A stretch of 64,000 nucleotides of DNA from Epiperipatus broadwayi (Eukaryota > Animalia > Onychophora), in NCBI GenBank assembly GCA_028023455.1, contig JAQFVV010000011.1:2728001-2792000 (forward strand), read 5' to 3'. Below the pieces are notes generated by a model. That model saw nothing but the letters and a program-made list of their open reading frames with translations, was not told the origin of the DNA and searched no databases. The position numbers and the translations under genes were made by a program. This document shows positions 11,641 through 55,700 of this stretch, one piece after another; within the stretch, counting starts at the first letter, position 1; every line of letters begins with the position of its first letter.

Positions 11641-11884
11641 CACATTTGAACTTTTATGGTTTGTTTTAAATTTTGTAAATATATAAAGCAGTGTTTTAAA
11701 AATGTAGATCTGTTTTCACTTGTAAATAGAGTTGTTTTAATACTGTTTGTGTGTATGTCTGTATATATATATAATGGTTATTTATTAATAAATGTAAAGT
11801 AACAAAACTGTTTGTTTTTCTAAAAATAATAATAATGATACTATCAACAATTTATTTTTTTAATATTTAAAAAAAAAACAGGTA

Positions 11885-12710
11885 TATTTTATATACCTGG
11901 AGTCTAGATGTAACATAGGTGATTTTAACACAGACTTTCAATCTTGCTTCAGCCAATGATTCTATCTCATACAACCAATACTCATGACCACACACATGTG
12001 AAAAGGATAAATGATCTCCAATATACATATTTCATGCTGAATCCCAAAGTCATCAGTTAGTCCAGATTACCATCTTCCACACATGTATATAATTAGTACT
12101 CAGTTTGTTTATATTAATATAGTAAACCTTCACATTTTAATGGACAGGCTTCAATTCCCTCCATCCTCCAACCCCCCCAGCCTTCCAAACCATTGAAAAT
12201 CTGATGATTTCATATCCAAATGCCTTGTTAATGCCAGTATTATTTCCATGCTCAGATTGGTTTTAAGTCTCTCTGACACCTCATGTATAGGACCTTGCCC
12301 ATTTAAATACACAGGAGAGAGATGGACAGAATAAGGCTTAATTTGTAATATTTTAAAACACAAGTATATTTTATATACCTGAAGTCTAGATGCAATATAG
12401 GCAATTAGTTTAAGCTTCCTTCAGCTATCCACTCTATCTTATAGAACACATACACATGAACACACACATGTGAAAAAGATAAATGATCTCCAATATAGTT
12501 ATTTCATGCTGAACTAGCACTCATCAGTTGATCCAGATTATCATCTCTCACACATATATAATCAGTGCTTAGTTTATATTAAGATAGCAAATCTTTACAC
12601 TTTAATGAACTAGCTTCAATCCACTCCACCCTCCAATCCTCAGCTATCCACACCACTGAAAATTTGATGATAAAATGTTCAAATCCCTTTTAAATGCCAT
12701 TATTATTTTT
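11885..12710 (-). mobile_element. Penelope-like 3' remnants in tandem (family A)
   Basis: Broken GIY-YIG C-terminus (MRCQRDLK, NHQIF, WRMEGIEAC) between two HHR motifs at 12017-12062 and 12489-12532. Confidence 0.75.
12489..12532 (-). ncRNA. Minimal HHR, family A
   Basis: TCAA-CTGATGA-GTGCT agttc AGCAT-GAAA-TAACTA-TA-TTGG. Confidence 0.7.
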
Positions 12711-14349: not shown

Positions 14350-14670
14350 GGGATTTGAACACAGACTTTCAAACTTTCTTCATTTACCCACTCCATTTTG
14401 TATAACCAATACACATGACCACATATATGTGAAAAAGATAAATGATCTCCAATATATGTATTTGTGAGCTGAACCAGCACTCATCATTTGGTCCAGACCA
14501 TCATCTCCCTCATATAATCATTACTCAGTTTATATTAACATAGCAAATATTTAAACTTTAATAGACAGACTTCAATCCTCTCCAACTTTTCAATCATCCA
14601 CATTAATGAAAATCTAATGATGGAATGTTCGAACCCTTGTTGATGCCATTATTGTTAATACTCATGTTGA
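14350..14670 (-). mobile_element. PLE family A remnant with decayed HHR (14448-14493)
   Basis: Colinear with the 11.9-12.7 kb units. Confidence 0.7.
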
Positions 14671-15059: not shown

Positions 15060-17230
15060 CTCATATAAAAACTTAACCATTCTATTTCTTCTTGTACTGC
15101 CTCATTTGACATCCACATCTCTGCATATAATGCATGTCTTTCTACTCTTTGTACTTTTTCTAATTAATCTAACACTCCTTTGCTAACACAAAACATCATT
15201 ATCATAGGTTAACCTTGCTACTGCCACCTCATACAATTCTTGCTACATTATATTTATTATATGAACATACTATTAGTTTCTTTATCAGTTCCTTTCTTTG
15301 CTTCATTTATCAATTTTTTTCTCCCATTCATCCAAGCAATTTCTCTGACTACTTAAGATGATTCCCGAATAGTTATACCTATTCACCACATTTAGCTTTA
15401 TATCCCACAAAAAAAATTCTCTCCTCTTTTTCCAGCATTTACCATCATTACTTTTGACTTTTCTTTACTAAATTTGATACTAATCTCTTTACTCACCCCT
15501 GCACAAGTTTTCACTACAGCTTCCATATCTTCCCTATTTTCTGTGCATAATAAAATAATATCAGCAAATAAAAGACCTGACAATGTATATGTTCCCTTGC
15601 CATCTGCTAATGGTATCTCTACTCCTCTTCTTAAACTTTCTATTATCCTCTCAATTTCTTTTAAATATAACAAAAACAAAATAGATGATATAGGGCATCC
15701 TTGCCCTACTCCCACACCATTTTTAAATCTAGCTAATGTTATATTTCCTAATTGATACATATAATTATGTTCATATAATCTCTTAATAAGATCTGATAAT
15801 GCTCCATTCATTTCTAAATTTACTGAATTTATTTTTATTCACTCTATCATATAATTGCCTACCCATGTTTCTACTCATATCTTTAAGTTATGTGACCACT
15901 AGTAAACTATTTCCATACGCCTATTTATTCTAAAATTTTCTTGCATTTCTCCCACTATATTATTTTTTACCTTCCATTTTACCACTCCTCCAGCCACCAT
16001 ATAAGCAAAAACTTTATATAACACTGATGTTATCACTATCAGTCTATAATTATTTTTATCTTTCTATGGTCCTTACCTTTTCCGTTGAATAATAGCCTCA
16101 CTCTTGTATTATTCAAGTTATCTGGAAATTCTGTCTTCTGTGCCATCTTATTAAAACTTAATAGATTTAATTTTGCCCTATTTTCCAAATTCATCAGCCC
16201 TATCTCTGTTGCTCATTTACCTAAACCTTTTTCCTTTCTACTTTTCAACTTTTTCCCTGCCTCATTTCAATTCATTTTCTGTAAAACTAATCTTTCATTA
16301 CTATGTGCTTTTATGATTATTATTATTATTTTGTGTTTCACATCTAACATATTTTCTATATCCATTACATATTAAAAACTATCTCTAATTCCTTTCTAGA
16401 ACTACTTTCTCTCTCCTAATCACTCAGTAATATTATTTCTCATTCTCTTACATTCCTTCTTTATATAATTTTTTATTTCCATCTCTTCCAATTTTATTAA
16501 TATCTTCCAATAATTTAATAATTAATTTCATTCTCTTTCTATAATGATCTATTTTAGCCAACTTCTTTTTATTTAAATATTTTCACCATTTATTATTAAC
16601 ATCTTTTTCACTTTCTTTGCTCTTAATAGCACATTTATATTCTCTGCATGCTTTTCCCCTCTCTTTTACACTTATACTAATTATCACTTTTTTCTGAATA
16701 CTCTGACCTAAAACCCTATTTGCTACTTTTTCTACTTCTCCACACCAATCCTTATATTAATTCACAACAAACTCTTCCATTTACTTTTATTTTATATTTT
16801 TCTAACTTATTTTTATCATTCACTCTCCATTCATACCATTCACTCTCTTTTCTACTTTCATTATTATTTTCCATCACATTACTAACCATTTTTATTGTAA
16901 AGAAATTATGATCATGATTATATGCTCCCTCTTCATTATCAAACACTTTAATTTTCCGTACTTTATTTAATCCCTCTTTCTCTACTAATACATAATCTAT
17001 TGGGTGAAATAGATTATTTCTAAACCACGTGTATTGCTCCTCATAAATATTTGACAAATTTCCAATGCTCAAATTCATTCTCTGACCAAAAAATTTCAGA
17101 AGCTGCCTGGTCTTGTTATTCAAGTTATCAATTTTTTTAATGTGTCCATTCATATCCTCTATAACCATTATTTTCTTCCTTTTTTGAATCTTGGGTTTTC
17201 CCTGATTTTCATTATATTTCAGTGCCATCT
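15060..17230 (-). pseudogene. Degenerate LINE ORF2 (AP endonuclease + reverse transcriptase), possibly RTE-X-like
   Basis: APE motifs IEDMNGH, YTWF, IDYVLV, HDHN (16752..17228); RT motifs GVGQGCPISSILF and LLFAD-IILL (15398..15811); downstream LEKVQR...SNEAVQ. Clade assignment is inference. Confidence 0.9.
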
Positions 17231-18370: not shown

Positions 18371-19020
18371 TAGTGTTACATTTTGAATTACAAGTACCAA
18401 ACTTATTTCACCCACAACTTTGATACCGCCACCCCTCTCTCTCTATATATATATACAGTAATGATTATCACTAATTATTTATTAAACTAGAGATTATCTC
18501 TAGTCCAGATATAAACTTTAAACCTCAGTTAAAGATTAATATATCTGATATTTTTAAATTAAATGCACAGTATCTTTATATAATTTTAAAAGAAAATGTG
18601 TTAGGGTGGAGGTTTTTTAATACATTTATAAAGGTATTATACATGACATAGAAAAATGTAAATAATTTCATATATATGTGTCTGTGTTTAATTTTAAAAA
18701 ATCAGATATATTAATCTTTAACTGAGATTTAAAGTTTATATCTGGGCTAGAGACAATCTCTAGTTTAATAAATGATTAGAGACAATCATAACTATTTATC
18801 TAGGATAGATGGTGTCAAAGTTGTGGCTGGAGTAAATTTGACATTCGTAATTCAAAATTGTTAACAATTTACTACTGCACAGATAATAAAAATATATAAA
18901 ATGGTGACTTGGGCCAACTGATGAGTGCTGATTCTGCACGAAATGCATCTTGGACATCATTTGTCTTTTATTGTATCTTCATTCATATGATTTGAAAAGC
19001 ATATGTGGTAGTGTGGAGAT
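18371..19020 (+). mobile_element. PLE-derived long fold-back (18371-18870) followed by HHR
   Basis: Long inverted arms; the right arm gatggtgtcaaagttgtggctggagtaaatt resembles the family A GIY-YIG tail and runs into the HHR at 18912. Confidence 0.7.
18912..18955 (+). ncRNA. Minimal type-I HHR with fully canonical core (family A)
   Basis: CCAA-CTGATGA-GTGC tgattct GCAC-GAAA-TGCA-TC-TTGG; predicted cleavage after AUC at 18949. Confidence 0.85.
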
Positions 19021-40730: not shown

Positions 40731-42367
40731 ACTATATAAATATTTTTAGGAACAATTTTACACTTAATTCTAAACAGAAGGCAATCAGTCCTTTACACAT
40801 ACACTGTGCTGTTATATTAAATCAATGTTGTTTTGTTGAATGTAAGAAAACTCTCAGTCCAAGACACAAGATAGAGACTTTGAAAAAATAAAAGTGTTTG
40901 TCTTATCTTTATAGCTAAATTCATCTTAAGATGGCTGTGCTCTATTTTGTTTAAAATTACAGTTTGAAACCACACTAGTAAATCTATTAATCAATTAATT
41001 CATTTACTTAATATTCCCAATCTAATGCAGATATGGTTTTACAATAATATATCCTATAGTATCGCATCTAGCAAAATAAATAAATTATTGATTGATATTA
41101 TGTCTTGTCACTACATATTTAGAATCTTAAGAAGCATTCATAATTTTAAATTTTCTAATATTTTTGTTATAGTTTAATGGGAATCCAGGTGTTACTTTCC
41201 TATAACAAATGGCCATGTAACAGTTATATAAATAACTAATTTAATCACAGAGGTTATATATTATGATGAAATATGCTTTTTTAATTTATTAAATATATAA
41301 ATAACAGATTGGAGTCTCCGTTTCACCTTAATGTCCAATACACCTTCTTACCTAAAGGTTATCAAGATTAGAATAAATTAGTTCACATTCTCAAGTTGAA
41401 AACAATCCAGGTTAATAATTGTTGAATTTTATTTTTCATCTTTGACTACTAAAGAATTTAGACATCTAATTATTAATTCAAAGCATGTGAAGATCATATA
41501 AAAAATATTCTGTAGATTATTTTTTTGAATTCACAAAAATATGATGTCATTCAAATATTGTAAATCAAAAATCAAAAAGATGAAACGCCTACTTTCATTT
41601 TTAATTCATTCATATTTAAAATCCTGTCACCAAACCTGAATCTCTTTTTAATAACTACTTCAGGAAACATTCTATAAACAAGACAATCACAAAAATGGAG
41701 ACAGGGTTGGAATTAATATTTATATCCTTGTTTAATACCAGCGTTTATTTCAAATTCCTCAAAAATTATATGACTCTCTTTCATTTCTTTATGTTAAAAA
41801 TTGTGCTATATCTAATTACATTTGGTAAACAACCAGTTAATTTCAAGCACTTACACAAATTAATTGAGCCAAATGTATTGACCAAATCAATAAAAGCAAT
41901 ATATAAAATAATTATACATTTATTCTTGACTTTTTCTTTTTCATTTTCCAATTCAACAAACCCATAGGATTTCTTGATATTCTAAAGCCACATTATAGCT
42001 CTGGTCACCAGACATCCATGACTGGAAGTGATATATTCAACAAATCCATGGAAGTATTTTTATTATAGTAAATAATAGTTGCATTTCACAGTAGTGCTTG
42101 CAGATTTTTTAACTTTACTTTTATAAATCAGAATAATATGCAAAGTAATGGATTATTTATGGATTGGGAGTTCATATAAAAGTTTGAGCTTTGGAAATGT
42201 CAAGGTTGGGTCACACTCCATGGACTTGAACTTATAAATAAATAAATAAATATATATATATATATATATGTCCACAGATGGCGTCCTACCAAAAACACCT
42301 ATCAAGCGTATTTTCGTTTACATAAACGTCAGAGTAGTTAGTATTCACTATCTCTAACTATAATCCA

Positions 42368-42406
42368 CTTTGATCATGTTTCAAGCTTTTGCTATCGTCA
42401 GGAAAG
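42368..42406 (-). ncRNA. Second family E HHR with small deletions
   Basis: CTTTC-CTGACGA-tAGC aaaa GCTt-GAAA-CATGA-TC-AAAG; core intact, stems I and III shortened. Confidence 0.7.
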
Positions 42407-42747
42407 ACAGGATAAAGAAACAGATCAAATCAAACCGGCGTTTAGAAACAATTTCTCGCTGCAAGCGGAATTTTAGACCTAATGTCAAACTCAGCATAGC
42501 AAACCAGATAGCTAATGGGTCTGATCTCAGTTCAGCATCACCACATAGTAGAAGCCTCTGCAATCTATATCATTGCAAGAAAGACCTCAAATGTACATTT
42601 ACGATAAACAAAAATGCAAGTTAAAAAACTTGCTAACGCTTGTATTTATGTCCACAGATGGCTCCTACCAAAAACACCTATCAAGCGTATTTTCGTTTAC
42701 ATAAACGTCAGAGTAGTTAGTATTCACTATCTCTAACTATAATTCCA

Positions 42748-42791
42748 CTTTCAGATCATGATTTCAAGCTATTTGCTATCGTCAGTGAAAG
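42748..42791 (-). ncRNA. Intact minimal type-I HHR (family E)
   Basis: CTTTCA-CTGACGA-tAGC aaata GCTt-GAAA-TCATGA-TC-TGAAAG; 6-bp stem I, ATCATGAT palindrome, cleavage after AUC at 42754. Confidence 0.9.
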
Positions 42792-43656
42792 ACAGGAATA
42801 AAGAAACTAGCTCTCGTAGGGGATTTTTTATTTTTTTTATCATATATATATATAACAAGATATTAAAAATAAATAGAAATCAATCCCTAATTTATGGAAA
42901 GAGAGAATTCCAAAATGTGTGTGGAAATTCAGATGTTCAATGTTTCTAGATTATCTAAGAAGTGCAGATTATTTGCAAAATACATGCATAGTAAGAGAGT
43001 GTGTTCTGAGTTTGAGCACTTGTTGATGGTTGTGAGATGGTGAGGCTCTGAAAGACATGCTAATAAGAGTATTAAATATAGTAATATATGTGTGAGTATA
43101 CAGACACGTACATACTATGACTAAGAAATAACACTTGAACAGTAGCAGTAGTAGTTTGCAATTATGGACCAATCTCACCACAACTTATTTTAGCATTTGA
43201 ATTTTAGAACTTCATTATAAATTTTTATAACCCCTTTACATTAATTCTAGGACAGTAGTACATTTTAGCACAGTCTGAATTATGAAAAATAATAACCAGA
43301 ACTTAGTAGTAACCAAATTGAAGACTGCTGAGATCTAAAAGATAATTTATTAAGAATTTGCACATTTCAGAAGTTTTATTAAACAAAGAATAGTTTTCAC
43401 TTACAAACCTAATAAATTATCCAGAACAAACAAAAGATGCTGGTATTTAAAGTGGTAGAACATTAAAATATTTTTATCTTTGCCAATAGTGTGTTTTAAC
43501 TTAAATAATTGGAAATTCAGTTTCTTTTTTTAAATAAATATAATTACAATTATTTTCTTTTGCTTGTATAATGTTTTTTACTTTATTTGCTAATTTTAAA
43601 GTTGCACATTTTTACTCAATCAATTTTATTCAGTATTGGCAAAAAAAACCAGTATA

Positions 43657-50352: not shown

Positions 50353-50754
50353 CTATATCTAATAATTTACTATCATCCCAAACCTTCAGTAGAATAAACT
50401 TTTATTTAATTAACATTGGAGACATTTAAACAAATCAATTACAAGTAGGATAAGGAAAAGGACAATAACCTGAATATGCACATTATTGTCTAAAGCTAGA
50501 TCACAATATTTAACAAACTATTTGTAAACATTAGTGAAAATAGCATAAGTCACAAATTATGAGTTATCATAATTAAACACTGTCACATAATCTGAATGCC
50601 TCAACCCTGCCTCAAGACCATTATTTAAGACTTTAATATGTTTATAAATGTATACAAGTCACACAATGAACTTCTTTATAAATCTTGATTTATTCATGAA
50701 TTATTATAACATACATGTTTGTATGTTTGTTATTTAGTTTATGAATATAGATGA

Positions 50755-51630
50755 TAATAATCAAACCTTAAGCTATGAACAATATCAATCTGTAGTCAAG
50801 GCAACCTCCTTTAATAATAAAGATGGTACCACCTCTATTTATGGTCTGATATATTTTTATTGACACTAAAGATTGCTGGTTAGACCATAGATAAAGTGAT
50901 ATCTTTATTGTTAAAGAAGATTGCCTTGATTACACAAGTTGAGATTGTTGATAGCTTAAGGGTTGATGTTATAATCTACATTTATAAACCTATTAAGAGC
51001 CTTGAATAATTGGCTTTATTGTCTTAAAAATATATAAAAATTTGAAGTTATTATTGAGTTTATTAGTCTCTGCTTTCTGAATTTAGAAGTTATAATTGAT
51101 TATTTATTAGTCTGCTTTTAAAACAGGTTATATTTGCCTGATTAATGAGGTTTGTTTAAACTTCTTTGCATTATAAATCTCACACTTCTTGATCAAGTTG
51201 CAATCTTTAGTATCTATATTAACATGTCAGATCATAGATAAAGGTGATCCTACCTTTATTGTTAAAGAGGGTTGCCTTGACTACAGGTTGAGATTGTTGA
51301 TAACTTAAGGGTTGATTATTATCATTTCATTTATAAATTTATTAAAGCCTTGAGTAATTGGCTTTATTGTCTTAGTAAATATACATACTTTATATGGAAT
51401 TTGGAAGTTATAAATAACTATTTATTAGTCTTCTTTCAGAACGGATTATATTTTCCTGATTAATGAGATTTGTATAAACTTCTTTGTATTATTAGTCTCA
51501 CACTCTTTGGTCAAATTGCAATCTTTTATATAAATATATCAGATTATAAGTAAAGATGATGTCACCTTTATTGTTAAAGAATGCCTTGACTCTAACGTTG
51601 AGATTGTTGATAGCTTAAGGATTTATTGTT
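50755..51630 (-). repeat. ~310-350-bp tandem units plus an inverted partial unit; possible PLE RT remnant
   Basis: Units start near 50882, 51230 and 51541; inverted piece 50755-50850; minus frames give KATLFNNK and VGSPLSMI. Confidence 0.55.
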
Positions 51631-55067: not shown

Positions 55068-55700
55068 ATACCTGTATTAATATAGTAATATGTAGGGTAT
55101 ATGAGCACAGACTTTCACATAACCCACCACTCACCACTCTATCTCATTTCACTGATACTCTTGAACACATATATGTCGAAAAGATAAATAATCACCAATA
55201 TACGTATTTCATACTAAACCAGCAATCATCAGTTTGTACAGATTATCATCTCCACACGTATATGCAACAAGTGCTCAGATATATATTAACCAATCTTCAC
55301 TCTTTAATGGACAGGCTTCAATCCACACCACACTCCAACTCCTTAACCATCCATCCAATTGAAAATCTGATGATGGAACGCTCAAAGGCCACCCTGAGAC
55401 TGAGATTCTTGCCACACTCATGTGACGGTTAAAGAGTTGGAATGTGGAGTGGACTGAAGCCTGTCCATTAAAGTGTGAAGATTGGTTACCTTAATATATA
55501 TATATATATCTGAGCACTTATTGCATATAAGTGTAGAGATGATAATCTGGACCAACTGATGATTGCTAGTTTAGCATGAAATATGTATATTGGTGGTTAT
55601 TTATTTTTTCGCCACATATGTGTTCAAGTGTATCAGTGATATGAGATAGAGTGGTGAGTAGTGGGTCATATGAAAGTCTGTATTTATATACCCTATATGG
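55068..55700. mobile_element. PLE family A inverted pair with HHRs at 55194-55237 (-) and 55551-55594 (+)
   Basis: Plus copy ACCAA-CTGATGA-TTGCT agttt AGCAT-GAAA-TATGTA-TA-TTGGT; inversion junction near 55420. Confidence 0.8.

Follow-up and report, generated by a model that had tools for sequence, protein, structure and literature searches.

The window analysed here, a 64-kb stretch (64,000 nucleotides) of contig JAQFVV010000011.1 from the onychophoran Epiperipatus broadwayi, carries on its minus strand a short non-coding element with two hammerhead ribozyme motifs, which is probably a retrozyme. The element is read on the minus strand throughout, and all coordinates are positions in the window. 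It is bordered on both flanks by (TA)n tracts, at 42250–42269 and 42841–42854, and the intervening 571 bp (42270–42840) therefore represent one insertion in a TA microsatellite. In the minus-strand sense, one half of this target (42841–42854) lies 5′ of the insert and the other half, a (TA)n(TAAA)n tract at 42233–42269, lies 3′ of it. Between the two halves, the insert consists, in 5′ to 3′ order, of an A-rich tail of 26 nt (42840–42815), an upstream repeat (R1, 42814–42643), an internal region (42642–42422) and a downstream repeat (R2, 42421–42263). An earlier reading of this DNA, referred to below as the original prediction, had placed the element next to a (TA)n tract; the tract is present, on both sides and not on one.

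R1 and R2 are direct repeats of 165 nt (42807–42643) and 159 nt, respectively, with 94.6% identity across 166 alignment columns and a block of 81 nt in which they are 100% identical (42284–42364, equivalent to 42663–42743). Each contains a type I hammerhead, as had been proposed for two repeats of about 155 bp on this strand. The two are separated by the 221 nt of the internal region and end in different ways. R2 stops directly at the (TA)n tract after ...GUGGACA, whereas R1 at the equivalent point runs on as UAAAUACAAG..., with which the internal region begins. The locus is therefore laid out as a 5′-truncated partial unit (R1, comprising a hammerhead and the unit's 3′ part) and, downstream of it, one full unit of ~380 nt, which is made up of the internal region and, as its 3′ part, R2. 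Self-comparison of the window finds 1.4 copies of a 380-bp unit at this locus and no further copies of the unit in the remainder of the 64 kb. The tail separates the (TA)n tract from the first unit and has no relation to the unit sequence: it shows no similarity above shuffled controls as either a direct or an inverted copy, and the consensus of the family to which the unit belongs departs from the window beyond 42814.

Penelope-like elements make partial tandems, the so-called pseudo-long terminal repeats (pseudo-LTRs); their insertions prefer (TA)n and bear a tail of 30–40 bp at one end (Craig et al. 2021, PMC8557442). The locus displays the partial tandem, the microsatellite target and the tail at one end, the latter being 26 nt long compared to the 30–40 bp described. 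It is a single insertion with a pseudo-LTR layout of the Penelope type, not an array that has arisen in place. Of the retrozyme architecture put forward in the original prediction, the tandem type I hammerheads on a short, non-coding and well-folding unit stand, but the array is replaced by a single insertion of 1.4 units. The locus thus offers a clean and young link between a short hammerhead repeat and the insertion signature of Penelope-like elements, i.e. (TA)n, tail and partial tandem.

The upstream motif, hammerhead 1 (42791–42748), is an intact minimal type I hammerhead. It is made up of a 6-bp helix I (CUUUCA/UGAAAG), the core CUGACGA, a helix II of 3 bp over a U.U mismatch, GAA, and a helix III, AUCAUGAU, which consists of 2 bp and a tetraloop and is an 8-nt palindrome. 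C17 is located at 42754, and cleavage is predicted 3′ of this nucleotide. All features that define a type I hammerhead are found in it, namely CUGANGA and GAA, a nucleotide other than G at position 17, three helices and an open helix I. In a search of 71 nt, the Rfam model Hammerhead_1 (RF00163) matches exactly 42748–42791 over the full model (positions 1–45) with 27.6 bits and E = 1.6e-5. A whole-window search at the gathering score gave no Rfam hammerhead, and neither did a 1-kb search at E <= 10. A strict descriptor (the core, a helix II of at least 3 bp, a helix III closed by A-U, a non-G at position 17 and a helix I of at least 4 bp) finds four complete motifs in the window, compared to 0.02 per dinucleotide-shuffled window, and a motif with a helix I of at least 6 bp and a palindromic helix III is not found in any of 300 shuffles. 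The full-model match and the descriptor bear out the intact hammerhead proposed at 42748–42791.

The monomer fold of hammerhead 1 is unstable, at +0.1 kcal/mol. Two copies that pair via an 8-bp intermolecular helix III reach -17.8 kcal/mol versus 2 x -5.8 kcal/mol as monomers. Both repeats also carry a second motif, CUGACG followed by a 5-bp hairpin and CGAAA (42711–42691 and 42332–42312, minus strand), which was rejected as a hammerhead: its A9 is a U, an extra C precedes G12, and family variants alter both CpGs without compensation.

The downstream motif, hammerhead 2 (42406–42368), is degraded. In the ribozyme segment of ~62 nt (42366–42421 in R2 and 42748–42807 in R1), every difference between the repeats is a deletion in R2. 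There are six such events (T, A, T, T, UG and A), which amount to 7 nt, and no substitutions. In the adjoining 101 nt past this segment, R1 and R2 are identical. The only deletion of 2 nt coincides exactly with the two positions immediately 3′ of the scissile C17 (42372). The core is kept, and helices I and III are broken: helix I is without its core-adjacent base pair, helix III is down to one A-U pair, and the palindrome is down to CAUG. Loop 2 is also shorter. Under the conditions used for hammerhead 1, no Rfam hammerhead matches hammerhead 2 at E <= 10. The motif with small deletions at 42368–42406 of the original prediction is thus recovered, and the state of its helices suggests that this ribozyme is probably impaired.

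The predicted cleavage sites at 42754 and 42372 do lie 382 nt apart, the two type I motifs being contained in 1.4 units. This spacing agrees with the 382-nt RNA that the original prediction expected the locus to release by double cleavage. However, with hammerhead 2 probably impaired, the double cleavage and the release of this RNA from the locus are doubtful. The dimer that the two palindromes were proposed to form in cis is doubtful as well, because both helix III and the palindrome of hammerhead 2 are shortened. Since only the upstream ribozyme looks competent for cleavage, the locus is more likely to be a dead end than to give rise to 382-nt circles.

The deletion cluster can be set against Logan contigs of the family, collected at an identity of at least 88% from four sequencing runs, of which X1 is DNA and X8 and X9 carry the label 'RNA?'. 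In all four runs, contig depth is zero over 42366–42473, which covers the hammerhead of R2 and a CpG-rich segment of the internal region (42422–42473) that departs from the bulk of the family. It follows that the hammerhead as it stands in R2 is private either to this locus or to the assembly. Possible causes of the clustered deletions are a reverse-transcription scar, an assembly error and chance. If the assembly were at fault, the second repeat or its deletion cluster would be false, and the true locus would contain one unit or two identical hammerheads. Such an artefact is quite unlikely. It would agree with the absence of the R2 hammerhead version from the contigs of all four runs (zero depth over 42366–42419), with the lack of a listed contig that spans the stretch, with the presence of only 58% of the sampled words in X1, and with deletions without substitutions being typical of some long-read errors. 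However, the identical sequence context in R1 is free of such errors, holes in contig coverage prove nothing, and the (TA)n flanks and the tail form the coherent structure of a single insertion.

The first of the candidate causes, a scar from reverse transcription through a ribozyme site that had been cut and joined again, is a tentative explanation and on the whole an unlikely one. The points that speak for it are the presence of deletions only, the identity of the 101 nt that follow, the loss of 2 nt at C17 and the fact that this version is unseen in the four runs. The sole other hammerhead tandem pair in the window (11873–12708) is old, with 78% identity, and is uninformative in this respect. 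If the scar were real, the locus would record a template RNA that had cleaved itself in vivo and was then copied across the circle junction or by a template jump from monomer to monomer. It would then be direct genomic evidence on how retrozymes are mobilised, and the deletion cluster at the scissile site may be a footprint of the mobilisation mechanism.

The RNA of the unit is highly self-paired. The notional 382-nt monomer between the predicted cleavage sites (42753–42372) has a linear fold of -106.9 kcal/mol (z = -3.64) and a circular fold of -102.4 kcal/mol (z = -3.73), the latter being as good in none of 200 shuffles. The GC content of the element is 37%, which is within the range of less than 50% used to define animal non-LTR retrozymes. 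None of its open reading frames (ORFs) has a Pfam match: ORFs that start with ATG do not exceed 63 aa, and the longest ORF, 84 aa, starts with TTG and is on the opposite strand. The internal region likewise has no ORF with a family match. The unit therefore encodes nothing recognisable, as had been claimed. The ORF with a reverse transcriptase and a GIY-YIG endonuclease that marks autonomous Penelope-like elements is missing, and for lack of an ORF the element is not an autonomous Penelope element. A tRNA-like origin, of the type known for short interspersed nuclear elements, finds no support in an ARAGORN search, which gave no match.

The composition of the element sets it apart from its surroundings. 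The ratio of observed to expected CpG is 0.83 in the element versus 0.28 in the window, which has 27.6% GC and is strongly depleted in CpG. The retained CpGs and the near-identity of the repeats fit a recent insertion, a young copy in a CpG-depleted genome, and both the CpG richness and the youth of the copy stand as originally described.

The unit belongs to a dispersed and very large family. In X1, 9019 contigs match it, and the summed depth, which is not a copy number, is 1.3–2.5 million over the internal region and the hammerhead versus 27 on the unique right flank. This shows that the family is very abundant, with roughly 10^4–10^5 unit equivalents. Exact words of the element are present in runs under five coded organism labels, so the family is neither small nor new-born but extremely abundant and common to these five labels. 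Pattern scans of the metagenome, genome_contigs and viral collections gave no further loci. The ribozyme is conserved across the contigs: within 42744–42797, the sole variant with a frequency of at least 10% is at 42781, which is N7 of the core and is C or U (39% in X1, with thousands of contigs). In one variant, helix III reads AUCAGCUGAU instead of AUCAUGAU and is still a palindrome.

The ends of other copies are also defined. Some stop at the same 3′ nucleotide adjoining (TA)n (loose end at 42665 in X8), and others start close to 42800, again adjoining (TA)n. A local tandem duplication or a satellite, generated by slippage or unequal exchange without an RNA intermediate and with the hammerhead as a passenger, would explain the 1.4 copies of the 380-bp unit at the locus, and hammerhead-bearing satellites are known in newts (PMC7229834). 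Nevertheless, this origin is very improbable for a family that is dispersed over thousands of contigs and has ends defined by (TA)n in several independent copies, that is represented by a single copy in the window, and in which the ribozyme core is conserved.

The pseudo-LTR layout also raises the possibility that the locus is what is left of a coding Penelope-like element, i.e. two pseudo-LTRs around what survived a large internal deletion or the loss of the 5′ portion of the downstream copy. This origin would account for the partial tandem with its tail and (TA)n target (PMC8557442) and for the minimal hammerhead with a palindromic helix III, a combination present in Penelope pseudo-LTRs (PMC4209133, PMC7229834). 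It would also be compatible with a 2026 bioRxiv preprint in which retrozyme families are sister to Penelope pseudo-LTRs (10.64898/2026.07.22.740005). The structure of the family argues otherwise. In the DNA run X1, the 221-nt internal region matches the hammerhead region in abundance, with a depth over 42474–42662 about equal to that of the hammerhead. Where loose ends are best supported, they follow the short unit colinearly instead of leading to other sequence. Those at 42799–42814 indicate that most copies continue upstream into a homologue of the end of the internal region, and at the unit junction, 42649/42650, there is no well-supported loose end and no switch to other sequence. The family therefore consists of short units, each of which usually runs into the next, and does not represent the flank of a long coding element.

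In addition, the element has no coding remnant. Of the ten longest open frames in the window, only one has a Pfam match (RVT_1 at 15401–15838 on the minus strand, E = 3.9e-10), and none is identified as a Penelope reverse transcriptase or a GIY-YIG endonuclease. By its motifs QGCPxS and FAD, the RVT_1 frame looks similar to long interspersed nuclear elements (LINEs) and not to Penelope. A remnant of a coding element is thus unlikely, and by the same frames the window is not filled with coding Penelope-like elements, in contrast to the original picture of a window full of Penelope-like elements.

The profile of the family in runs X8 and X9 is different from that in DNA. The bin that contains the hammerhead is 7–100 times as deep as the internal bins, versus a ratio of about 1:1 in DNA, which argues for real transcripts of the family. 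Go-back joints, which would correspond to circular junctions, were not reported in these data, where the reference holds the tandem junction and cannot tell circular RNA from tandem DNA.

The stretch 42270–42840 on the minus strand is best described as a recent retrotransposed copy of a very high-copy hammerhead repeat of ~380 nt, that is, an animal retrozyme of the type without long terminal repeats (non-LTR) and a non-autonomous Penelope-like derivative; the probability of this assignment is estimated at about 0.72. The earlier observation is thereby confirmed and the earlier interpretation partly supported. As far as the sequence alone can tell, the element is built like an animal non-LTR retrozyme, which is a known kind of element. 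Such retrozymes are non-coding, low-GC tandem repeats of 150–450 bp with type I hammerheads (Cervera and de la Pena 2020, PMC7229834), and examples include the mussel repeats of 350–390 bp and the axolotl Rtz_353, which carries the hammerhead HHR_Amex2 (PMC7229834). The element described here has in common with them a short, non-coding, low-GC unit, one type I hammerhead per unit, a self-paired RNA and a very high copy number. The likeness is one of architecture, and it applies to a locus of 1.4 units in which one of the two ribozymes is damaged. Hammerhead 1 shares with HHR_Amex2 the geometry of helix III (2 bp and a tetraloop) and the U.U at the base of helix II; cleavage by HHR_Amex2 is weak for the single motif and good for the dimer (PMC7229834). 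Unlike in animal retrozymes, helix I of hammerhead 1 is a simple stem of 6 bp, and a loop 1 that could make tertiary contacts is not evident.

The comparison extends to two other systems. With Penelope pseudo-LTRs (Cervera and de la Pena 2014, PMC4209133; PMC8557442), the locus shares the partial tandem, the (TA)n target, the short tail and a minimal type I hammerhead whose helix III is palindromic. In contrast to Penelope-like elements, the repeats enclose no reverse transcriptase or GIY-YIG ORF, and the unit of the family has a length of only ~380 nt. Plant LTR retrozymes (Cervera et al. 2016, PMC4918200) are likewise non-autonomous and have two hammerheads in direct repeats around a non-coding core, and a circular RNA intermediate is proposed in both cases. 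However, they contain type III hammerheads, true LTRs of ~350 bp, a primer-binding site (PBS), a polypurine tract (PPT) and target duplications of 4 bp, and they are mobilised by Ty3/gypsy elements and produce RNAs of 600–1000 nt (PMC7229834). Here, the hammerhead is of type I and the unit is 382 nt long; a PBS and a PPT were not searched for, and with flanks formed by a (TA)n tract a target duplication is unreadable.

Several points weigh against the assignment to animal retrozymes. No autonomous partner element has been identified, the ten longest frames of the window containing no recognisable Penelope ORF. Minimal hammerheads are more typical of Penelope pseudo-LTRs than of the canonical ribozymes of invertebrate retrozymes (PMC7229834). 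The 27.6 bits of hammerhead 1 fall short of the RF00163 gathering score of 34 bits, because its helix III is short. The 'RNA?' label of X8 and X9 is a guess, and DNA may be present in these runs. Furthermore, neither the unit junction nor the locus as a whole is strictly spanned by a contig, and the tandem continuity of the family and the two-repeat layout of this copy rest on the depth profile and on missing loose ends.

In a mechanism consistent with the retrozyme assignment, multimeric transcripts of the family would be cut by their hammerheads, which probably act as dimers that pair through the 8-nt palindromic helix III. The resulting RNA of unit length would be circularised by tRNA ligase. 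A Penelope-type reverse transcriptase with a GIY-YIG endonuclease would then reverse-transcribe the circle, or else a multimer, at a nick in (TA)n, with priming at the A/U-rich site ...ACAUAAAUA, and this would yield copies longer than one unit. The locus is in line with present thinking, in which animal retrozymes derive from Penelope-like elements and are non-autonomous.

The three other complete minimal type I hammerheads of the window, at 12494–12527 (minus strand), 18918–18949 (plus strand) and 55556–55589 (plus strand), belong to a different family and have a palindromic helix III. Several relatives (24041, 55207 and 55556) also have a U.U at the base of helix II. The unit described above shows no sequence similarity to the other hammerhead families of the window, from which the original prediction had rightly separated it. 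The Penelope-type hammerhead at 12494–12527 does not match Rfam Hammerhead_1 even in a 71-nt search, in contrast to the 27.6 bits of hammerhead 1, which is therefore nearer than this other motif to the classical type I consensus.

Older tandem repeats with ~77–78% identity are found at 11873–12708 (spacing of 482 bp) and at 50879–51627 (spacing of 347 bp), the latter with an inverted partner (50738–50876 / 51200–51337). Finally, a hammerhead-like sequence at 14470–14510 on the minus strand reads AUGAUGA instead of CUGAUGA, its GAAA is degraded, and it is probably a decayed or variant copy of the Penelope-type family.

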